A stretch of 64,000 bases of DNA from Dimorphilus gyrociliatus (taxonomy: Eukaryota > Animalia > Annelida), in NCBI GenBank assembly GCA_904063045.1, contig CAJFCJ010000006.1, positions 2,656,946-2,720,945 of the forward strand, written 5' to 3'. The stretch's first letter is position 1. Each line of letters begins with the position of its first letter. The notes beneath the pieces are model-generated. The model ran no database searches, had not been told where the DNA came from, and worked only from the letters and a program-made list of their open reading frames with translations. A program made the position numbers and the translations under genes. This document shows, piece by piece, positions 15,094 to 61,158 of the stretch.

Positions 15094-16205
15094 ATGACAC
15101 CGTCAGATGAAATATTCGGGGATGAAAAAGGGTAAAAATTCATATAAATGAAAAGGTTATTATCAGTAAAAAAGTTTAAAAATTATTATCTTTTTATAAT
15201 TATAGAAAATTATTTATTGGTGGTCTTAGTTGGCTTACAGAACATGATTCTCTTTATAAATACTTTGTTAAGTACGGTGAGATAGTCGATTGTGTCGTTA
15301 TGTATAATATAAGAACCAAGAAGTCAAGGGGTTTTGGTTTTATTAAGTTTTCTCAGGAAGAAGCGGCTGATAAAGTGCTTTTAGACGCTCCTCATATAAT
15401 TGACGATAAAGAAGTTGATGTTAAAATATGTAATCCTAGGCATTTGAATCAAGGACCAATTAAAAAAGATTTAGTAATGAGTAGAAAAGTGTTTGTAGGA
15501 GGTTTACCTTTGACTTGTTCAAGCTTACAATTAAAGAATGTTTTCTCTCAATATGGAAAGGTCAGTTCATTTTCTATCATTTAATATTATTACCTATTCT
15601 TTATGTCTTAGGTTGAAGAAGCTGTTGTTATAAATGATTCAACAGAAAAGTCAAGAGGTTTTGGCTTCATTACATTTAGAGATGTTACAGACGCCGAGAA
15701 GATATGTAAATTACATTTCTTTCAAATAAATGACAAACAAGTTGAATGTAAAAAGGCTCAAACTAAAAAAGATTTGATTAAATCAAAATATCCCACTGTT
15801 TCTCACGGTGGCGATGATGCAGGAAATTCGTCATGCTTACAACAATATCTACTAGCTTGTCATCAGTTTCAACTGCCCTATTATGATTATGGTAATTGTT
15901 AACTAAGTTCAAAATGTAGATTTATCAAAATCATTTAATCGATAGCTGCATCATCATTATCAGAAGCGAATTATCTGGGCCATGGTCTTCCTTGGTCTTT
16001 AAGTTCAGTTGGTCAACCCATGATGAACGCCGAATCGAATAGAATATATCAGTATCCATCAGAACCAATTTCGGCCTATGCAACACGTCAAAATGATTTT
16101 TCTGACTTCTTTCATATGTACAATCAACCTGACCTACTAGTTTCTCCTCACTTGACCTCATCATTACCGACAATAGTCTCAAAGAAATTACCTCACAGTA
16201 AGTAA
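15094..16205 (+). CDS. Two-RRM hnRNP A/B-Musashi family protein, DAZAP1/Hrb27C-like
   Basis: Spliced N-terminus MTPSDEIFGDEKG|KLFIGGLSW, RNP1 'SRGFGFIKF'. Second RRM 'KVFVGGLP...SRGFGFITF...VECKKAQ', then a low-complexity tail. Confidence 0.85.
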
Positions 16206-16403
16206 GTAGCCTTCATAGAAGAAAATTTATACCTCTAATTATACCGATCATCAAGATTGTAGCGTCTCTATGTAATTTCATATTTTTGCATATTTTATAA
16301 TATTATTAATTAAAATATATTCTTAGGAAAAGTTTAATTACTTAATTACTTAAGTAATTAGTCAATTGTGTTATTTTTTCAGTTTCTTTTTATAAAAGTT
16401 TAT

Positions 16404-17888
16404 TTAAGCATATTCCGTAAAGGATTCTTCGCCATCTTGAAGAATTGAACTAGATTTAATACTGAAATATATAGACATTGCTAAACAAAGAACAAATAAT
16501 ATAGCACCAATTGAATATAGTATTATTAGTTTTCTCCTCTCCTTTATATCCAGTTGAATTAAACATCCGCTTTTGTAGAAGCTATTTTCATCAACACCTT
16601 CAATTGAGGGAAAGAGCAAACATTACTATTGAACACTTATTAAAAAAATAATATATATATATATATACAATAGTATGGTTTGTTTTGTTGAAATTCTAAT
16701 GAAATATTTGAATATCCATGGCAACGTTCATTAGCCTTTTGAAAACAATTCCAAAATTCACACTTATTCACAGATTTTCCATTACAAAGCCAAAATTCAC
16801 ATCTGCACTCTATTTAAAAGAGAATTGAATAAATAGTATAGTTCTATAATAGACTTATGAGTTTTTACTTGAATTGCAAGTTTTTCTAATATATTCATTA
16901 ATATTCTCCATCTTTTCTTCGGAGAATTGATAATTTTTCAAGCATCTTGAATAATCTTCGTATAGATTACAAATCCTTTGAAAATTGTAACCCTTATTCA
17001 AAGAATTATTAATTCTTATATGATAAATCCAACATTTTGGACTTTTCTTTACTTTCTTTTTATAAATAGCTTCTTTTAGACGTTTTTCATAGATATTTCT
17101 ATATAAACAATGACTATTAATATTTATCATCCTTAAAATACCACTCTTATCATCTTCCTTGCATGAACTATTTCTAAAAGAAACGAAACGTTCGTCAGTA
17201 ATATTCCAAGCATTTAAAATATTCCTTGAACAAGTTTGCCGTAAACAATCATCACTAAACGATCTTTTACATTGCATTAATTTGCATATTAATTCTAAAG
17301 AATATTAATAAAACAATAACGTTTATTATTATAATTTATTCAAAGAATATTAATTAAATTTTTACTTACTTTTATTACAATGACTGATTGTAAATTTCTT
17401 TAAATCATTCATTTGAATTTGGCAATTATTTATCTTGTTTAAACAGTCTAATAAATATTCATATCCAGCACATTGTGCAATAGGATTTATAAAATGTTTA
17501 CTCTCTATTTTATAAAATGTATTAAAACAGAATTCTATAGAAGATCGACAAATTTGAGATTGAGTTGCTTCGTTTATAATGCTTAAGTAAAATTTTTTAT
17601 CGATAGTTTCATCTAGACCATAATTAAGACCTATTTTTGTATATATTATTATTACTTAATATAGGTTTAATTATTCTATGATTTAGCATTTCCAAACAGA
17701 AAAGTGAAGGTCAAATTAGATTACTAGACTATACAGATATTATTATTATAGCCCTATGAAAAGTAGCGAAATAGCCTCGAATCATAGAATAATAGGCATT
17801 TTTTATTATAAAAGATTAAATTCAAGTTAAAAAACTTACCAATAAAAACATTTATAGTAAGGAATATATTAAATTTCCCAATCATCAT
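16404..17888 (-). CDS. Orphan cysteine-rich type-I membrane protein, paralog 1 (exons 17888-17840, 17630-17370, 17294-16869, 16809-16669, 16597-16404)
   Basis: All junctions are GT-AG and phase 1, and the frame is open throughout. Short hydrophobic N-terminus MMIGKFNIFLTINVFIG, repeated Cys domains, C-terminal TM 'LIILYSIGAILFVLCLAMSIYFSI'. Confidence 0.75.
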
Positions 17889-18772
17889 TGTTTTCTTTTT
17901 TTTATTAATATCTTATTTATTATTGAATTATCTGAAAAAGAATAGAAATTCTGATATTTTATTTAATATATATATTTAAGAAATAGAATAATAAGATATA
18001 AAAATACATTAATCTTATATTGTTAATAGGCCATGCGCTTTGCACAATTCGTATTGCATTAGGGTTTTTTGTCTGGTTGAATGGAATATAAGTTAAGATA
18101 TATATATATATATATTTTTTAAAGTAAATATGCTAAGGGGAAAAGAAGAGAGGAAGATAAGAAAGAGAGAGAGAGAATGAAAGAGTTATTTACCTCCTTA
18201 TCAATAAAAGTATAATATAAAGGGTACCGTCTAACACATGTATCTATATAATTAATTTGATTTTCTATTATAACATGAAAGAAAAAATTGTACAAATGCG
18301 TTTATGTACTAAAATATACACTGTAAATATATTGCCGTTCACTTACCTAAAGTACTCAATTAGTAGTTACTCAGCTGAAGTATATTACAAATGACTCCAC
18401 AAATATAATCAATAAATTAATTTAGCTGTTAATACAGTATTGTTTTTAAATGTTTCTGTTTGTAGGATATAGTAAGTGATTAAACTTATAAACTATTCAT
18501 TAATCCTTTTCAATATCATATGGGTCATATAATTTTTGATTATTATCATATCATTTGATTGAAAAACATACTGTTTTATTCCACTATTTTTCTCTATTTA
18601 TAAAGATTTCAATATATGCTTAATACAATATACATTTTCCTATATTTTGATAAAATATTCAAATAATCTCTAAGGTGAATTATTAAAAATAAGAAAAAGA
18701 GGAAAATAGACGTAATCTTTACTGGTATTAACAATAAAGGTTTTTTTTAGACACTATAAACCTTGACAGATA

Positions 18773-18775
<3 letters not shown>

Positions 18776-18814
<39 letters not shown>
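18776..18814. repeat. (TA)n microsatellite
   Basis: TA run with one interruption. Confidence 0.9.
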
Positions 18815-18815
<1 letters not shown>

Positions 18816-19520
18816 CAGTTTTCTGTATATATTATATCTTTTACTATACAAAAAATACTTGTCTAAAGAACTGGTTGCAAGAAATGAAGTACAATCTTGG
18901 ATAAAGGCATCTTTTATACTCTTTAAAAACTAATATAAAACATCTTCTTTTCTGTTTTTAACCATAAACCTCTTATGAATTGTTCATAATTTCTTAAGTA
19001 TTTTTATATTAAATAATCAGATTGTTATAAATTTTTACCATCTTCTTTATATTATTAACATCTTTTGTGGATTTTTGTAAATTTATCGCAAAAAAAAGAA
19101 AACAAAACTAGGTTGAATGAGGTCTTTTGTAATATTAGGCCAGTTTGTTAGCCTTCAGAAAATTCTCCTTGTCTTTGTATTATTTAAAGTTACGTAATTA
19201 AATATAACGCAATACTAGACAAAAGTCTGTCTATAAATCCTAAAAAAAGAAACCTATTGTAAACTTATCCAAATCTCGAAAATAAAAACACTACATTTAT
19301 AAATCTTATTTTCCTTATATATAATATTTTTCTGTATTTTTATGTTTTTTTTTTAAAAACAAAATTATACTTTTTATTTTTTTTTCTCTACAAAAAAAAA
19401 ATGAAGTAATTAAAATCAATTTTGAAAAAAATATGAAGAAAAATAGATGAGTTTCATTTGTTTGATTTCGTTTAAAAATAATGATATAAAAGAAAGAAAT
19501 GGATAAGAGTTTTTAGTTTG

Positions 19521-20734
19521 TTACTTTTCAATTTGATCAACGAATCTTTTGAGTATTGCGAATATTGAGATCATCGTTGAAAATAAAAAAAAGAGTATAA
19601 TTGATGTATTTAGCGTTGATTCTTTACCCGGGCCTATAAAAAAAGAAAAGATAAAAGATTTAAAAACTGGTAATCTAAAATGAATTATACAGTATATATA
19701 TATACAGTATATACATACATTGTCGAATTGCTTTGCCATAACTTCTTTTAACGTGTGTAGTATAAGAATCGCAATCTTCAAAAGCATTTTTAAAGCAATA
19801 CCAAGTATTACAGCCATTAACGACTAGTCCGTTACATCTTTTCAAAACCGATTGACACTCTATTTTAGAATGAAACGATAAAATGATAATAAACAATACA
19901 ATTGTATAATAAATAATAAAATATTTACCTTTACTACAATAATCTTTAATATATCCTTTAACTACATCAAAATTTTCAATAATACAATCGTTTTGTAGTC
20001 TTTCAAGGCATTTCAATTGCATTTGATAAGATATACATACTTCTTCAGCGTCGTAATAACTTTTCATATAAAAATCAATGTGTTTCCATAAAAGTTCATT
20101 ACATTTCAATATTTCTCTTCCGCATTGTCTATTGTTTAAGTACGTTTTATGAAAATGTGGTATTTCTATTTCGTTTAAGGCGAAATTTTCGTAAAATTCT
20201 TTCGTAAAAGACATTTCTAAAAGGACTTAAAAATTATTTTAATAAGTTTTTCCATTTTTAAACAGTTTTTCTTTAAAAAAACAAAATAAGAAACTAAATT
20301 TTTCTATTACCAAAAATTTGACAAATTAAGAAGGTCCGATTCATTATTTTTTTAAATAGTAGATTAGAAATGAGACTATTTGAGTATTAGTGTTGCTAAT
20401 AAATATATATTCTTAAGTTATCCTTTCATCAAAGAAAGTAGGGAAGAAGAGGAGGAGTAGGAGGAGGAGATGAGGTAGACGAGAGGAATAAGAAATGAAA
20501 AATATTCCAAAATATGAGGGCAGAACAGTTTTGTGTAAAATGCACAAATGTACTAATTGATACTACTCAACATAAATACACCTTTAAATTTCGTATTATA
20601 CAATACATATTGAAATTAAAGCAACTTCTTTTTCTTTTACTATAAAAAATAAGGTCAAATTTTAGGTCAACGACGTAAAAAAAAACAAGAAAAAGAGAGA
20701 AGATATAGACAGACACTAAGCTAATTATCTTCAT
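19521..20734 (-). CDS. Orphan cysteine-rich membrane-anchored protein, paralog 2 (exons 20734-20641, 20216-19929, 19859-19719, 19633-19521)
   Basis: Signal-like MKIISLVSVYIFSLFLVFFY (exon 1 is tentative), Cys domains A and B, hydrophobic tail 'SIILFFLFSTMISIFAIL'. All introns are GT-AG phase 1. Confidence 0.72.
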
Positions 20735-21459
20735 TTTATTTTCATCCTTAATTTTACTTTTTCAAGTGCAAATGTAAAGGAAAAACAACAAATGCAAAAT
20801 TTTCTCATAAATAACGTAATTCGATATTTCAATTGTCTCGCTCACTTTAGAAATAGGAAGAGATATTTGGATTTTTTTCATTGATAATCTTCTACTTTTA
20901 TTTGAAATTAACATAAAAATAATCATAATTAATAGAGAAAAATGATAAAGATAAGAAAATGTATAAAATAAATCATAATGAAAGGGAAGAGAGGATATAT
21001 TTACATTTTATTTATAAACATTAAATAACCTCAAAAATAACCTTAAATACAATTATAATAGTAAAATAATAGGGAGCAGTCTTACAATCAGTCCTATGTA
21101 AAAATTCAAAATGTTGAACTGATATAGATTTTACACGTTGCATCATTCTTTTCCCCTTTAATTTAAAAAGGATGTTAACTTCCAATCCAATACTTCCTGC
21201 CAGTCTCGTCTCTTCCAAGAACTGGTTTAATATGTCAAACATAAATGAATTACTAGCGTTAGTTAGATAGCCTTTATTCAGGACACTATTATTTTATCTC
21301 CTTTGTCTTAAGTGTTCGAGAATTTTGTAATAAATAGAGGAAAATTTTACCATAGTAAACAGTTCTCAGAATATTTTTAACTGGTATATATATATATGTA
21401 TATATATCAGAAATTTTCATTCAGGCATCTTGGTAGATTTGATTTTTGACTCGTCAAAT

Positions 21460-22185
21460 ATGAAATTTTATTCAATTTTTATTGCAGTTTTTACGTTTTA
21501 TGGTAAGTTTTTTAATTCTTTTATTTTGTTTTTTTAAAAAAAATATTAAATAGTTAATATTTTAATACGATATTTTATTCGATAGTTTGCGAATTAATGA
21601 TGAACGTTAAAAGTGAAAGAATGATAGAAAGGAGTAAGTTATCACTCAAAATGAAATATGATTTGTTGAGAAGACAAAAAAGATCTTGGGCTGATAATCG
21701 ATGTAAGACACTTATCGATGACTGTACTAATGAAATGGTAAATGCATTTAATCAGCAAAAGTCGAATGGCTATAATAGCGCAAAATATTGTGATATTTAT
21801 CATGATCTTCAAAAGTGTATTAAGAATGTTGAAATAGAATATTCCTGCCAAATACACGGAAGGGAGCAAAGTTATAAGATAATTGATAAATTCTGTTCAA
21901 ACGGTATGTTCATCTTCATTATAGATTGCTTATACTATACATTAAATAAACTATGATTATAGGCTGTCAAAGGGAATTAGAAGATTGTCTGGGTCTTGAT
22001 ATAAATTCTTGCGAACTATTTTATTGTCGTAAAAAGTCTTTCAAAAAGTGTGGAGTGTTCAAAATTCCTGGAAGTAGAAAAATTTTTCTCGAAAAGAACA
22101 AAAAATGTAATAATACATATTATTATTAAATAAATAATAATAATAATAAACAAACTAAACAAACAAAACAGGTACAAAACATTAA
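21460..22185 (+). CDS. Orphan cysteine-rich secreted protein, paralog 3 (exons 21460-21502, 21586-21903, 21963-22106, tentative 22172-22185)
   Basis: Signal MKFYSIFIAVFTFYVC, furin-like RRQKR/S, Cys domains A and B. The tentative last exon gives C-T-K-H-stop; if unspliced the protein ends CNNTYYY*. Confidence 0.72.
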
Positions 22186-23121
22186 GAAAAAGGGAGAAAT
22201 AAAGCCCGTGAAAGAAATATCTCGGAATTTCCTATAATTATTGAATAACAATGGGATAAAGAAGTGATTATTTCTTGTGTTCTTCGTCTATATGTTTTGT
22301 TATATATTTTTATATTTTGACAATGTATGTGTTTACTTCTCGGGGCAACTTTTCTTCTGATTTATCTACTAAAGTATTCTATATTCTAGACTTTTAGCAA
22401 CTTTTTCGTATTAATACAAAATCTATAATATAGTAATTATTTAAGTTTCTCTAGAGTACTGTAAAAGACCTTGCGAAATGAAAGCACCATAATGGCAACC
22501 AGTTAAAGTTAATTCAATAAGCTATTATTATCAGTTGAATAATATCAACTTGAAATATCTCCTTTTCAAATGCGGATTAGAAATAGTACAATAGCTCAAG
22601 GTCACCCTTAAAAGCATGTGCATTAGTTTTCAAAGAAATTCTATACATTGTATTAAAAATCTCCTATCTATTAAGGTTAAGGAGAAAAGTTTTAATTAAT
22701 CTTTACAACTTACAAACGTGTTATTTATCAATGTAAGCTCATTCTTAAATAGAAAAAATCAACCAATAAGAAAGGAATAACTAAACAATTTACTTTTCCG
22801 AATAGGTCCTGGAAATGGTAAACCAATGCTCCCTACTGAAATCTCGTGCAGTAGAGAAAAATAATCAAAATATATCTAGTATTTAATATTTTTACCTTTG
22901 TTTATAATCTCTATATTCACTTCCGGTGCTTATAATACTTAATGCAGAACATGAAATATTAAAATATCTTGTTATGCAAGAAAATAAAAGTAAACAATTG
23001 AATTAGAAATTCTTTATGTTTGATTTCTGTTGTTCTATTTAAATTTGTTTTTATTAAAAGAAAGATTTACAGATTGTAATAATTAAAGTGCAGTAATATT
23101 TGCAATATTAGTGTAAGATAC

Positions 23122-24335: not shown

Positions 24336-25615
24336 TTATCTACAACCCCATGGCAGGAAAGTACAGTTGCAAGTGTTATGCTCCATATTAAACTTCACAA
24401 AGGTATATAATTCTCTATCTCCCTCACTCATCACAGATGAAAACAAGTGTTCTACATTGCAGAGAGGCATTAGTCGGACTCCAAATGGAATCCAAGGGTT
24501 CTTGTAACACAATGTCTCTATAGCACTGAAGTCTTGGTTTAATACCAAATGGCACTCCTGGAAATCTTTATTTGGCAATATCGACTGTATATTTGTAATA
24601 TTCCCCATAAAATATTGCAGTTGATTGAAGTCTAAAATTCTGCAGTATTCTTCAGACATTTGCTTAATAACTCTTATTGTTGACCTGTTTTCATTGTTCC
24701 ACCTATTCATGAATTCATCATCAGGATACTCTAGAGCTTCAATGATATAATCGGTGAATGGGATTATAAACAGCTTATCTCCTTTAAAATACTTAGGTTC
24801 TTTTTTACCCCATTTGTTCTTTAAATGTGTATATAACTCATTCAGACGGAGGCTTGGAATATTAATAATATCTGAGTAGAAAGCATATTCCAGTTTCATT
24901 ATAATATCGACGTATGGCAAGTGATCATTGATTTTGAAATGTTTATTTCCCAGGATTGTATACCCAATCACTTTATTATATATTGGATATATACTTCCTT
25001 TAATAACTTGAATTATATCATCGCTGTTTCTTAGAAGATGAACATCTAAAAGACGCTGTATACATGTTTGACGTTGAGGAATATAGACATAAATCAGTAG
25101 GAAATTCTGTTCTCCAATGGTTTGTATCGTAAATATGAGAAATAATCGAGAAGAACGATTCAAGAGTTTTCTGGTGTATATTTTATAATGATTGTAATAT
25201 CTTATAGCATATTCATGAAATTCTTGCATAAAATCTTCCTGTGTTATGTTCAAGTCCCGCAGTTTGGCTCTACAATTCGGAGAATTCAATATGTCAGATC
25301 CATATTCTGACATTTTTGTAAATAGGAAATCCCTTGAACTTTCTAATAGAAAATAAATACATTTTGCATATAAAATTTAGTTCGATCAAGTAGCATCAAA
25401 TATATTAATAGAATAGACATTTATATAAAGCACTATGATACAATTTTACGGCTGGAAAGAGCGCCATCTGTTTTAATGTAAAAGCAGTTGACGAAACGCG
25501 AAAAATTTTATTACGGATAATAGTATAAACATAAACTAAAGTTACCTGTAGATTCAAGAGAGTAGGACACTTCGGCGTGTTCTGCGGAGGATCTTAAGTC
25601 AATAGTACTTCCCAT
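24336..25615 (-). CDS. Hypothetical protein of unknown family, about 346 aa; probable exon 1 25615-25546 plus a large exon 25306-24336
   Basis: A 325-codon open frame in AT-rich DNA. The upstream exon MGSTIDLRSSAEHAEVSYSLEST(E) has a GT donor and a phase-1 match to the acceptor at 25307-25308. Confidence 0.6.
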
Positions 25616-27104: not shown

Positions 27105-27670
27105 CTATTTTAAGAAACATATTAGACTGGTATGGGGTCTGGAATTATCATGCAGTAAAATAATTTGTTTTCCGGCCCTTATCCTATGCAGTCTCCTCCT
27201 TAGCCTCTTTAGGGTCTCCACATACTGAATGGAGTTGACTGTTTCACCATAATCCATAAATTCAACATGGATTAATCCTGAACGGTTCCAGAAAACTGTA
27301 CACATCAGTTTTTCAGATGATTTAGTCATTTTTAGCTTTTTTTCAGGTGGCGATGATGAGTGTTTGTAGGTTAGGGAAGCCCTCTTTGATTCAGGATCAT
27401 AGAGATGAACCCAAGATTCATCTCCAGTTACTATTTTTTCTAAAAATGCTTCTTTTTCTGCTGTGTATCTATCAAGTAGTTCAATGCAATGGCTCACCCT
27501 TACCTCTTTTTGATCCTGATTAAGATATTAGGGGATCCATTTAGCACAAATTTTTCTGTACCCCAGCTCCTTAATCATCTTCCCAATAGCCTCTTGACCA
27601 ATATCTAATTTTTTGGCAACTAACTGTCCTGAATTGTTATTAACCCCCTCGTTCTTGGTTGTCAATTCCA
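27105..27670 (-). mobile_element. Degenerate Tc1/mariner (mariner-type) transposase fragment
   Basis: 'LGYRKICAKWIP', 'IVTGDESWVHLYDPE', 'KLMCTVFWNRSG', 'ILLHDNSRPHT'. There is a frameshift/stop between ORFs 27528-27749 and 27105-27497. The third catalytic Asp region (YSPDLAPSD) and the N-terminal HTH are absent. Confidence 0.9.
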
Positions 27671-57971: not shown

Positions 57972-58585
57972 CTAAAAAGAGAGAAAGTAGTTGGCAAAGA
58001 TAAATTAAAATTCCTAAAGCATTATCATTTCAGCTAGTAAAACATGAATGTTTATATACATGATATATAGATGAATATATTTCCATTAATTAATTATTAA
58101 AGTAGCTTTCAACAGATAAAGAAATCGTTAGTATTTTAATTAAACGACTCTGAAAGTATTACCTAATTTCCTTATTTGGTCCATATTTCTTTGTCTATAA
58201 AACAATTGTTCTAAATTGATTTTAACAAAACCTTATATAAAATTGACTTCTCGTTTAAACACATTTAGAGAAATGCATTCATTTTTATATCTAATCGTTG
58301 TATGTAATTAGCATATTTGTAATAATTACTTTTGTTACATTTTGATCTAATAAAATTGGAAATTTTCTTTTGGAAACAAATCGCTTATCGATGAAGATCT
58401 TTTATTATGATAAAATGAAATGTTAACGATTGACCAGTCTAAGACACAAGGAAATTGACTAATTAGAAGCAATAATTATTCAAGAATAACGCCAGTGTCG
58501 CTAGTGGAGCTTTTACATTATTCTTCCACTTGAATGATAGGATATACAAGTTACACTAGCATTGAAGAAACTCGAATCTGATGAT

Positions 58586-59539
58586 ATGAGCCCTTCCAAT
58601 ACTACTCAAACAACAAGTAATATAGAAGAAATGGCATTTCCATTAACCGTAGCAATTCTATTATTCTTATTTGGTTTACTTGGAAATTTAATTGTTATCA
58701 GTACAATTCTAATATCTAAGCACTTGAAACTTATTAATCAAGGTCTTATAGTTAGTTTGTCACTAGCGGATACAATGTTTCTAACACTTGCCTTTCCGTT
58801 AATAGTGGTGGCAATTATTCACAAGAAATGGATTTTTACCTATGAAGTTTGTGTATTCGAAGGATTTGTAACTGTGACAGTTTGTCAAATTTCGGTTTGC
58901 AATTTAACAGCAATTTCAATAAATAGATACATAAACATATGTCATTTGACTCTGTATAAAAGAATATTTAGTGAAAGGTATATTTTTCTGTTGGCTCTGT
59001 TAGCTTGGCTCTGTGGAGTTATTCCATCAGGGTTAGGACTATTAATGAACTATGCAAGAATAGCATATAGTCCAAAATTGGATTCGTGCGTCTACGAATG
59101 GACATATAGCATGAATTTTAATATTATCCTAGCAATCTTCTTTACACTTCAATTTATAATAATTGTTTTTTGCTATACAAGAATCTACTATACGTTTATT
59201 TCAAGTAAAAGAAGAATACATGGACTGAATCAGCAAAGAAATAGCCAAAGTAAAAGAAAGGAAGATAAAAGGCTTATTTTACAATTGTTTATTGTTTTCA
59301 TAGCATATTTGGCTTGTTGGTATCCTTATTTAACATTGGCCCTTTTTATAGATCCATATCATACATATCCAAGATACGTTTATGATATAACAGCTAATTT
59401 TATAGTTTTAAATTCAGTAGTAAATCCACCAATCTATTTCTTTTTTAATAAAGTTTTAAGGAAAGAAGCTTTAAAATTTTGGTCATTCGGATATTGGAAA
59501 GATACAAGTTCAATTTCTAATCAATTAACAATTGACTAA
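58586..59539 (+). CDS. Class A GPCR, NRY-type (melatonin receptor / Tre1-Moody-like), intronless, copy 1
   Basis: Seven TM segments, 'GLLGN', 'LSLAD', 'ISINRYINICH', 'CWYP', 'NPPIY'. Confidence 0.9.
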   Translation: MSPSNTTQTTSNIEEMAFPLTVAILLFLFGLLGNLIVISTILISKHLKLINQGLIVSLSLADTMFLTLAFPLIVVAIIHKKWIFTYEVCVFEGFVTVTVCQISVCNLTAISINRYINICHLTLYKRIFSERYIFLLALLAWLCGVIPSGLGLLMNYARIAYSPKLDSCVYEWTYSMNFNIILAIFFTLQFIIIVFCYTRIYYTFISSKRRIHGLNQQRNSQSKRKEDKRLILQLFIVFIAYLACWYPYLTLALFIDPYHTYPRYVYDITANFIVLNSVVNPPIYFFFNKVLRKEALKFWSFGYWKDTSSISNQLTID

Positions 59540-60156: not shown

Positions 60157-61158
60157 ATGAGCAATCTTTCCAATATAACAAAAACTCTTACTAATACAAA
60201 GGAACCTCCTCCATCAACTCTGGAATTGGTTATTATTCTTATTGTAGTTGTGATTCTATTAACATTTGGTTTAGTTGGAAATTTAAGTGTAATATGTACA
60301 ATCCTAATTTCGAAGAAATTGAAATTCATTCAACAAGGACTGATAATAAGCCTATCTATGGCAGATTTTATATTTTTAACATTGGGTTTCCCTATCATTA
60401 TTGTGAATGTTGTAAAAAATGAATGGATATTTTCTCATGGACTGTGCGTTTTTCAAGGTCTCGTAGTAACTACCACTACTTTAGTATCAGTTGGAAATCT
60501 TACAATAATATCTATAAACAGGTATATGAGTATATGTCAAATACCTTTATATAAAAGATTATTTACTTCAAAGTTTATATTAATTCTGTCAATTGTTGCC
60601 TGGTTGTACGGTATTATTCCTCCTTGTTTTTCAACACTTTTTGGTTGGACTACCATCAAATTTGAAACAAGTTTAGATAGTTGCGTTTATAATTTCGATT
60701 ATAATATCATTTTTAATATATCGTTATCGGTCTTCTATGGTCTACCTTTGTTTGTCATAATTTATTGCTATGTTATGATTTATCGAACAGTTTGGAATAG
60801 TAAGAAAAAAGTAGGTTTAATTGTTCAAACTGGAAACGGAAATGGGGGTGGTACTCAGGCGAAGAAACTTAAAAAGGAGGAGTTGCGATTGGCCCTTCAG
60901 CTATTTATAGTTTTCATTTCGTTTATTCTTTGCTGGTATCCCCTTTTGATAGTTGTCCTCTTCATTGACAATAAAATGGAATTACCTAGAATAGTTTACG
61001 ATATTACTGGAAATCTCATTGTACTTAACGCTGTCATTAATCCACCAATCTATTTCTTCTTTAATTCAACACTTCGAAAAGAACTGATCAGACTTATCAT
61101 CTGTAAGAAACCATCAGCTACTCAAATAACAGAAATATCATTAACTGGTACTGGCTAA
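60157..61158 (+). CDS. Class A GPCR, NRY-type, intronless, copy 2 (tandem paralog)
   Basis: Seven TM segments, 'GLVGN', 'LSMAD', 'ISINRYMSICQ', 'CWYP', 'NPPIY'; colinear with copy 1. Confidence 0.9.
   Translation: MSNLSNITKTLTNTKEPPPSTLELVIILIVVVILLTFGLVGNLSVICTILISKKLKFIQQGLIISLSMADFIFLTLGFPIIIVNVVKNEWIFSHGLCVFQGLVVTTTTLVSVGNLTIISINRYMSICQIPLYKRLFTSKFILILSIVAWLYGIIPPCFSTLFGWTTIKFETSLDSCVYNFDYNIIFNISLSVFYGLPLFVIIYCYVMIYRTVWNSKKKVGLIVQTGNGNGGGTQAKKLKKEELRLALQLFIVFISFILCWYPLLIVVLFIDNKMELPRIVYDITGNLIVLNAVINPPIYFFFNSTLRKELIRLIICKKPSATQITEISLTGTG

Follow-up and report, generated by a model that had tools for sequence, protein, structure and literature searches.

Three intact, spliced protein-coding genes that share two cysteine-rich modules were found at positions 16404-22185 of a 64-kb stretch of the genome of the miniature annelid Dimorphilus gyrociliatus (contig C6, G000:C6:2656946-2720945; hereafter, the window). 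Genes 1 and 2 lie on the reverse strand and gene 3 on the forward strand; they encode 356, 194 and 172 amino acids, respectively, and their coding sequences of 1071, 585 and 519 nucleotides (nt) are each divisible by three. Junctions were located by reading three frames per strand, and exons were searched individually. An earlier reading of the DNA letters alone (the sequence-only reading) had spliced these three genes by hand, and each was recovered where that reading had placed it, with canonical borders. All ten introns are GT..AG and in phase 1, with lengths between 59 and 209 nt, compatible in size with a species median of 66 bp (PMC7854359). Exons of the three genes have a GC content of 27.7%, against 17.7% for their introns, in a window that is AT-rich overall (~30% GC).

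The genes have a common layout: a signal-peptide exon, a module A of ~68 residues with six cysteines, a module B of 47 residues with six or seven cysteines, and a tail exon. Intron positions, again all in phase 1, recur across the wider family described below: one after the signal-peptide exon, one placed two to three residues past the last cysteine of A, and one within the codon for the last cysteine of B, which is interrupted as T|GT, T|GC and T|GT in genes 1, 2 and 3. The cysteine patterns given in the sequence-only reading were exactly as it had described them, as were the sizes of the B exons (141, 141 and 144 nt in the same order), the split codons and the intron phases. The short first exons, which it had called signal-peptide-like, are hydrophobic by Kyte-Doolittle hydropathy in the window genes; together with the transmembrane tails of genes 1 and 2, they make a cell-surface or secreted nature likely. 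Exon coordinates and those of other features are collected in Table 1.

Table 1. Exons of the three cysteine-rich genes and other features of the window. A and B profiles were built only from paralogs on other contigs; KD, maximum Kyte-Doolittle value over the number of residues in parentheses.
Feature	Position	Strand	Description
Gene 1 exon 1	17840..17888	-	ATG at 17888; signal-peptide-like, 16 codons + 1 nt; GTAAGT donor at 17839; KD 2.30 (8)
Gene 1 exon 2	17370..17630	-	Module A, six Cys, C-x6-C ... C-x8-C-x6-C-x14-C; A profile E 7.5e-5; phase-1 GT..AG borders
Gene 1 exon 3	16869..17294	-	426 nt; Cys-rich stretch (6 Cys), then second A-like module (4 Cys); A profile E 7.6e-6 on C-terminal half
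Gene 1 exon 4	16669..16809	-	Module B, 141 nt, 7 Cys including one at position 3; B profile E 1.4e-8; GTATAT donor right after T
Gene 1 exon 5	16404..16597	-	Short stalk with one Cys, 22-residue hydrophobic transmembrane stretch, 19-residue polar tail, stop 16406-16404; KD 2.8 (15)
Gene 2 exon 1	20311..20344	-	Start codon; signal-peptide-like, 11 codons + 1 nt; start, 34-nt length and G|GTAA donor kept in syntenic contig L040
Gene 2 exon 2	19929..20225	-	Module A; A profile E 9e-16; orthologue identity 58-64%; predicted three-helix bundle
Gene 2 exon 3	19719..19859	-	Module B, 141 nt; B profile E 5.8e-14
Gene 2 exon 4	19521..19633	-	Stalk, 17-residue hydrophobic transmembrane stretch, 9-residue basic tail, stop; KD 2.55 (15)
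Gene 3 exon 1	21460..21502	+	ATG at 21460; signal-peptide-like, 14 codons + 1 nt; GTAAGT donor; KD 2.84 (8)
Gene 3 exon 2	21586..21903	+	Basic linker and module A; A profile E 4.3e-12
Gene 3 exon 3	21963..22106	+	Module B, 144 nt; B profile E 2e-12
Gene 3 exon 4	22172..22185	+	Finishes split Cys, three residues, stop; no membrane anchor; sole AG + G[TC] within 400 nt keeping frame
SMARCAL1-like gene	~11.1 kb
(AT)n microsatellite	18770-18815		Spacer between genes 1 and 2
15-nt duplication	19686-19717		Inside last intron of gene 2
Intronless 325-amino-acid open reading frame	24336-25313	-	No Pfam match at E<=1e-3; between Cys-rich cluster and mariner remnant
Mariner-type transposase fragment	27105-27497	-	Pfam Transposase_1 E 3e-13
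Glycogen-debranching enzyme	28.7-32.8 kb
Pex19	~34 kb
Rhodopsin-type receptor gene, intronless, first of tandem	58562-59539	+	7tm_1 E 7e-41
Rhodopsin-type receptor gene, intronless, second of tandem	60157-61158	+	7tm_1 E 2e-43

Gene 1 carries a second A module that is partly degenerate, retaining four of the six cysteines. The N-terminal half of the same exon has B-like spacing in its middle, and a second copy of B was considered there; comparison of this half with the B profile by hhalign gave a probability of 1.6%, which is not significant, and the candidate was rejected. Cysteine totals are even, with 24 in the ectodomain of gene 1 and 12 in A plus B of gene 3. The tail is predicted to decide the destination of each protein, genes 1 and 2 being membrane-anchored and gene 3 secreted. 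The last exon and intron of gene 3 are the least certain part of the models: were its 65-nt last intron retained, the product would stop six residues past the cysteine, at 22129. A search of positions 15500-23000 with Rfam returned no RNA family.

The relationship among the three genes was examined with profile hidden Markov models built only from paralogs on other contigs and run against all 2,690 stop-to-stop open reading frames (ORFs) of the window. The A profile matched the four A-type exons (E 9e-16, 4e-12, 8e-6 and 8e-5), the B profile matched the three B exons (E 6e-14, 2e-12 and 1.4e-8), and neither gave a further match at E<=10 among these ORFs. As profiles from other loci match exactly these exons, the proposal that the three genes are paralogs with common A and B modules is borne out, and we regard their paralogy as secure. 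In pairwise comparison, the window genes are not one another's nearest relatives; the cluster is old and did not arise in a recent tandem burst.

When run over the genome, a combined profile yielded 45 exon-level matches at E<=0.01, corresponding to ~33 loci, a number that is approximate since near-identical pairs may be haplotigs or allelic duplicates on small contigs and some loci carry stops. Contig C34 has seven of these loci, C19 and C6 (the window contig) three each, C2 and C5 a pair each, and all others are single; A precedes B on the same strand at at least 15 loci outside the window. The cluster therefore does not define the family, contrary to what the sequence-only reading had supposed, and five loci already have public, uncharacterised models: DgyrCDS1652 (CAD5112430.1), DgyrCDS8634/8635 (CAD5120052.1/CAD5120053.1), DgyrCDS14848 (CAD5126814.1) and DgyrCDS14378/14380 (taxid 2664684). 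Its description of the genes as unrecognised is accurate for the three window genes, which are absent from the protein collections searched, but not for the family, part of which has been deposited in this uncharacterised form.

The publicly modeled genes are true paralogs of the window genes: in them, too, a signal peptide is followed by A, B and a tail, introns interrupt the gene at the same three sites, and the cysteine frame is shared. They differ in lying on other contigs, in sharing 20-45% identity with the window genes, and in their tails, which resemble glycosylphosphatidylinositol (GPI) signals or are short and cysteine-rich instead of comprising a transmembrane segment and cytosolic tail. 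No name, Pfam domain or study was found for them. Across the family, tails thus range from a transmembrane helix with a short cytosolic tail (genes 1 and 2), through none (gene 3), to a hydrophobic, GPI-signal-like C-terminus or a short cysteine-rich end (paralogs).

Some loci have departed from this plan. At L011 (G000:C330:4058-4939) and L018 (G000:C63:37057-37900), the B exon continues without the split-cysteine intron into a shared extension of ~230 residues that has no Pfam match, a different architecture. L015 (G000:C212:27207-27536) and L016 (G000:C43:19129-19458) are nearly identical to each other and have A and B fused in one frame, with the last cysteine of A and the intervening intron gone; these are probably decayed or aberrantly processed copies. 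In addition, A and B both start with C-x6-C-N and share N-A-x3-C-x2-Y, which led MAFFT to stack A onto B; the alignments affected were set aside. The idea that the two modules are old duplicates of each other was rejected as unproven, the hhalign probability being 3.8%.

Several lines of evidence bear on the splice junctions. When placed on their own loci, the public models DgyrCDS1652, 8634, 8635, 14380 and 14848 have introns at the three positions described here, the split cysteine among them; in the public annotation, transcript assemblies from PASA were weighted tenfold and isoforms were derived from PASA (PMC7854359). DgyrCDS8634 and DgyrCDS8635 are two isoforms at a single locus (L006, G000:C12:153861-154267), with the split-cysteine intron removed in one and retained in the other, and with different ends. 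In at least ten paralogs with the T|GT split, a short intron of 48-95 nt separates the T from a tail exon whose first residues are often C-P-G-x-G-G.

Synteny with the window is seen in a 25.5-kb contig from a related worm (L040; Logan assembly of run SRR23372228), where the cluster is flanked by the debranching enzyme and Pex19 at one end and by SMARCAL1 and RCC1/BTB at the other. In its orthologue of gene 2, exon 1, the donor and acceptor between A and B, and the stop codon are conserved, and the introns are unalignable. L040 precisely lacks the 85-nt last intron of gene 2 (window 19634-19718), and its frame continues through ..Q-C-P-G-K-E.. to a transmembrane stretch, tail and stop that match those of gene 2. 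This intronless reading is exactly what the T|GC splice would yield and thus supports the last junction of gene 2. A second orthologous pair (L004 and L043) has kept all three introns, with conserved exons and diverged introns. A short duplication is also present within the last intron of gene 2, the intron that is absent from the related worm (Table 1).

Cysteines of B covary with those of the tail. A cysteine at position 3 of B goes together with one among the first 25 tail residues in 13 of 14 members; gene 1 has both, and genes 2 and 3 have neither. This covariation suggests that the tail exon is part of the fold, and a disulfide from B to the tail would fit in members with the cysteine pair.

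We compared gene 2 with its orthologue in the related worm, using the ratio of nonsynonymous to synonymous substitution rates (dN/dS). Over the whole gene, identity is 68% and dN/dS 0.14, as against 84% and 0.05 for the neighbouring glycogen-debranching enzyme, with synonymous sites near saturation in this comparison. By exon, the values are 58% and 0.22 for A, 89% and 0.03 for B, and 69% and 0.14 for the tail. The substitution pattern indicates that gene 2 is under purifying selection and that its module B is as constrained as the debranching enzyme. In the L004 pair, pN/pS is 0.22, and B is again the most conserved part. Five or six A modules form well-supported one-to-one orthologue pairs with the related worm, from which it follows that most of the divergence among paralogs is old, and not ongoing. 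The related worm also has an extra family gene adjoining the debranching enzyme. A mariner-type transposase fragment occupies the same place in the window (Table 1).

These data bear on the suggestion, made in the sequence-only reading, that the divergence of the genes reflects rapid evolution, and on the broader explanation that they are fast-evolving recognition proteins (in immunity, gamete recognition or adhesion) whose paralogs have been driven apart by positive selection. Beyond cysteines and some aromatic positions the paralogs indeed have little in common; the two worms do not carry the same set of genes in the cluster, the relative's contig lacking gene 1 and having an extra gene; and the positional counterpart of gene 3 is 28-37% identical, compared with 84% for the neighbouring enzyme. 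Further, expanded families in D. gyrociliatus are reported to consist mostly of immunity-related local copies (PMC7854359). However, both gene 2 and the L004 gene show low ratios, B is constrained like a housekeeping enzyme, and the five or six paralogs with clear one-to-one orthologues are at odds with continuing diversification by positive selection, so that we consider this explanation improbable; a role in immunity or gamete recognition would be pure inference. Rapid evolution is an apt description of gene 3 at most, and the deep divergence among the three genes reflects old duplication. The family evolves by birth and death, at very uneven rates.

The same comparison raises the question of whether gene 2 alone is functional, with gene 1, gene 3 or both decaying or never expressed and their frames open by chance or youth. 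Neither gene 1 nor gene 3 has an orthologue of demonstrable constraint, and both are missing from a public gene set that was built with transcript evidence (PMC7854359). In addition, the second A of gene 1 has lost two of six cysteines, gene 3 has no tail, and decayed copies exist elsewhere in the family (L015/L016, as well as loci with internal stops). Conversely, all five exons of gene 1 and all four of gene 3 are open, their seven introns are without exception GT..AG and in the same phase, the cysteine counts given above are even, and gene 1 retains both the position-3 cysteine of B and the tail cysteine with which it covaries. Absence from the annotation is itself weak evidence, because gene 2 is also missing from it and yet is constrained. 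On balance, it is unlikely that gene 1, gene 3 or both lack function, and we continue to treat all three as intact genes.

Predicted structures were obtained with AlphaFold2 from a 37-row alignment, using as input the read-through of gene 2 from A through intron 2, which is in-frame and stop-free, into B. The A+B model is all-helical, with a mean predicted local distance difference test score (pLDDT) of 84.6: A forms three helices (block-mean pLDDT ~85-97) and B forms short helices, and the 23 intron-coded residues appear as a low-confidence helix that is to be disregarded. Module B folded alone (mean pLDDT 82.7) gave a short helix and a helical hairpin. Foldseek searches of the PDB with A+B and with B alone returned nothing at E<=0.001. 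With VIA-align, A+B matched generic helical bundles (Z<=8.8) and B alone matched TPR-like hairpins (Z<=4.8); as modeled, B has no specific structural counterpart among those found. Pfam searches of the individual exons, and of ~45 family pieces and full-length members, gave no match at threshold. Against PDB sequences, the A profile matched nothing at E<=10, the sole match of the two profiles being a chance 12-residue match to hemocyanin.

Below threshold, one resemblance recurred. The model of A superimposes on RGMB (6z3m_C, 6z3j_C) with Z 7.1 and a root-mean-square deviation (rmsd) of 2.6 Å over 65 of 74 residues, at 20% identity; among the ten best-Z entries of both VIA-align lists, RGMB has the lowest rmsd, and its identity is the highest of any entry. 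RGM's N-terminal domain folds as a three-helix, three-disulfide bundle and forms the part of RGM that binds BMP and GDF (PMC7354924). Module A is predicted to share with it an extracellular three-helix bundle of ~70 residues, six cysteines spaced alike about a C-x8-C-x7-C core, and an end of the form C-S/K-(x)-G. Unlike RGM, the family has neither an RGM_C/vWD domain nor a GDPH site, and A is followed by B and a transmembrane or other tail; RGM_C matched no family member. The Pfam model RGM_N (PF06535; gathering score 24.2 bits) matches two independent paralogs in register (E 0.0015 and 0.01; 19.1 and 16.5 bits).

It could be argued that A is a genuine N-terminal domain of the RGM type that has diverged, and that the family comprises tethered or soluble binders of TGF-beta, BMP or GDF ligands, serving as co-receptors or traps in the way that the RGM head clamps the finger region of BMP2 and GDF5. 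In favour of this reading are the common six-cysteine frame (C..C, C-x8-C-x7-C, then C followed by S/K-G) and three-helix bundle, the superposition on RGMB, and the in-register RGM_N matches, which are no worse than that of the worm's own RGM (E 0.011, 16.4-20.1 bits, also below the cut-off); an A-repeat protein of the gastropod Babylonia, described below, matches RGM_N at E 0.4. Nevertheless, all RGM_N matches fall below 24.2 bits, the A exons of the three window genes show no match to RGM_N at E<=5, and MIT domains and other plain three-helix bundles tie with RGMB in Z. By hhalign, the A profile reached probabilities of 17% against the Dimorphilus RGM head and 2.6% against a three-sequence dinophilid RGM alignment, in both cases over the C3-C5 core only and without significance, and, as noted, it found no PDB sequence. 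With no RGM_C/vWD part, and with RGM contact residues that cannot be mapped onto A, we judge this reading unlikely. The genome does contain a bona fide RGM orthologue, L038 (G000:C2:36336-36491 and surroundings; RGM_C E 5e-6, human RGMB E 1.8e-6), in which S-S-S-H stands in place of the RGM autocleavage motif G-D-P-H, as it does in the orthologue of the related worm.

Neuritin (CPG15), a small secreted or GPI-anchored six-cysteine protein with the same C-x8-C-x7-C core, is a second point of comparison, differing from the family in having no B module. Its Pfam model, NRN1 (PF15056; gathering score 27 bits), matched an A-type protein of the gastropod Haliotis below that score (E 0.001, 19.7 bits) and no Dimorphilus member, and found nothing over the whole genome. 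Neuritin was also among the language-model neighbours of a family member, which we treat as a lead only. Taken together, the models suggest an RGM_N/neuritin-like, six-cysteine, three-helix head as the closest known shape of A, a sub-threshold likeness that does not establish membership.

DUF19 is a twelve-cysteine extracellular domain, and the sequence-only reading had noted a loose resemblance to it. A and B together would then form one DUF19-type domain like that of nematode T20D4.11, consistent with their 12 cysteines in ~118 residues and helical prediction, and the A module of the second gene at L004 does match DUF19 (PF01579; 157 positions, gathering score 23.2 bits), the matched part being positions 94-148 of that model, with E 0.023 and 14.9 bits. 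This was, however, a single sub-threshold match among ~45 pieces; full-length members gave none, and the DUF19 model run over the whole genome matched no family locus. Moreover, it is the C-terminal half of DUF19 that A matches, yet in these genes A comes before B. The resemblance was accordingly not upheld, and a DUF19 identity is very improbable.

Relatives outside the genome were sought with an A+B profile of 117 positions run against 1.84 billion representative proteins at E<=1e-3. It returned 17 proteins, consisting of the Dimorphilus public paralogs, exon-sized fragments from assemblies of the related worm, and three gastropod proteins (whole-library E values): Patella caerulea KAK6191880.1 (1.3e-9), Babylonia areolata XP_076471641.1 (1.6e-6) and Haliotis rufescens XP_046339575.2 (7.3e-4). 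Compared with the A profile by hhalign, gastropod proteins reached probabilities of 89% (Haliotis) and 69%. These proteins, of 269-562 amino acids, resemble the family in having two to six tandem A-type six-cysteine modules and hydrophobic, GPI-signal-like C-termini; unlike it, they have neither B nor a split-cysteine tail exon, and their tandem A arrays carry mucin-like, threonine-rich stalks. In the same search, module B was seen only in Dimorphilus and the related worm, although B alone is near the limit of significance and distant homologues may escape. In the collections searched, the family is seen with both A and B only in dinophilid worms (D. gyrociliatus and its close relative), and module A alone reaches gastropods. 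Neighbours in the ESM Atlas all scored below 0.9 and serve as leads only, with no usable match for the part comprising B and the tail. A word search with the stop-free read-through ORF of gene 2 returned no match, not even to the gene itself.

We consider it probable that the cluster consists of three intact protein-coding genes for small, disulfide-rich proteins, secreted or membrane-tethered, belonging to a family that has been seen whole only in dinophilids and is built of extracellular binding modules. Phase-1 borders, which all ten introns have, are the classic arrangement of shuffled extracellular modules. In the scheme that we propose, the signal peptide would be cleaved and A and B would become, within the secretory pathway, rigid helical knobs stapled by disulfides, with B locked to the tail in members that have the extra cysteine pair. 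The knobs may then be displayed on the cell or released from it to bind an extracellular partner, a role suggested by analogy with the similar-looking six-cysteine, three-helix heads of RGM, which binds BMP and GDF, and of neuritin. Duplicates would have diversified in their surface residues and type of anchor. Given how strongly B is constrained, that module may make an invariant contact or serve a structural role; A, with a looser surface that differs between paralogs, may be the part that determines partner specificity.

A number of observations weigh against this reading. The binding role rests on analogy, and the likeness of A to RGM_N or neuritin falls short of establishing homology; nor do the models reveal how the cysteines pair. 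None of the three window genes occurs in the protein collections searched, despite the use of transcriptomes in the public annotation. The related worm's syntenic contig shows nothing corresponding to gene 1, and the positional counterpart of gene 3 is the poorly conserved one cited above, so that, among the window genes, constraint is demonstrated for gene 2 only. The final exon of gene 3 adds just three residues beyond the split cysteine. In gene 1, basic residues precede the hydrophobic stretch instead of following it, which is unusual for a stop-transfer anchor, and signal peptides and anchors were called throughout from Kyte-Doolittle hydropathy only.

The analysis adds three genes to a published set of 14,203 and indicates that this family's short, AT-rich genes with several exons are under-called, ~5 of the ~33 loci being represented in public protein sets. 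It also describes a two-module extracellular architecture, A and B with a swappable tail, for which there is no Pfam entry and no literature was found; one of its modules is tightly conserved between species, and the other reaches molluscs and resembles the ligand-binding head of RGM and neuritin. A more far-reaching possibility, which we think quite unlikely, is that A is a genuine RGM/neuritin-type offshoot, expanded in dinophilids with a new B and interchangeable anchors into a repertoire of ~30 proteins, tethered or soluble, that bind secreted ligands of the TGF-beta family or others. If so, (i) an animal with a strongly reduced genome would have diversified its morphogen co-receptors or traps in a way not seen before, (ii) A and B would each found a new domain family, that of A being shared by lophotrochozoans, and (iii) the RGM link would provide tractable natural variants of a BMP-binding fold. 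If the RGM link is false, this is an ordinary lineage-restricted family of secreted, cysteine-rich proteins, of which animal genomes have many.

The remaining features of the window are listed in Table 1; the genes to either side of the cluster are ordinary ones. An (AT)n microsatellite occupies the spacer between genes 1 and 2. The intronless ORF beyond gene 3 may be a transposon-related or orphan gene, and the two rhodopsin-type G-protein-coupled receptor genes toward the far end of the window are arranged in tandem on the forward strand.

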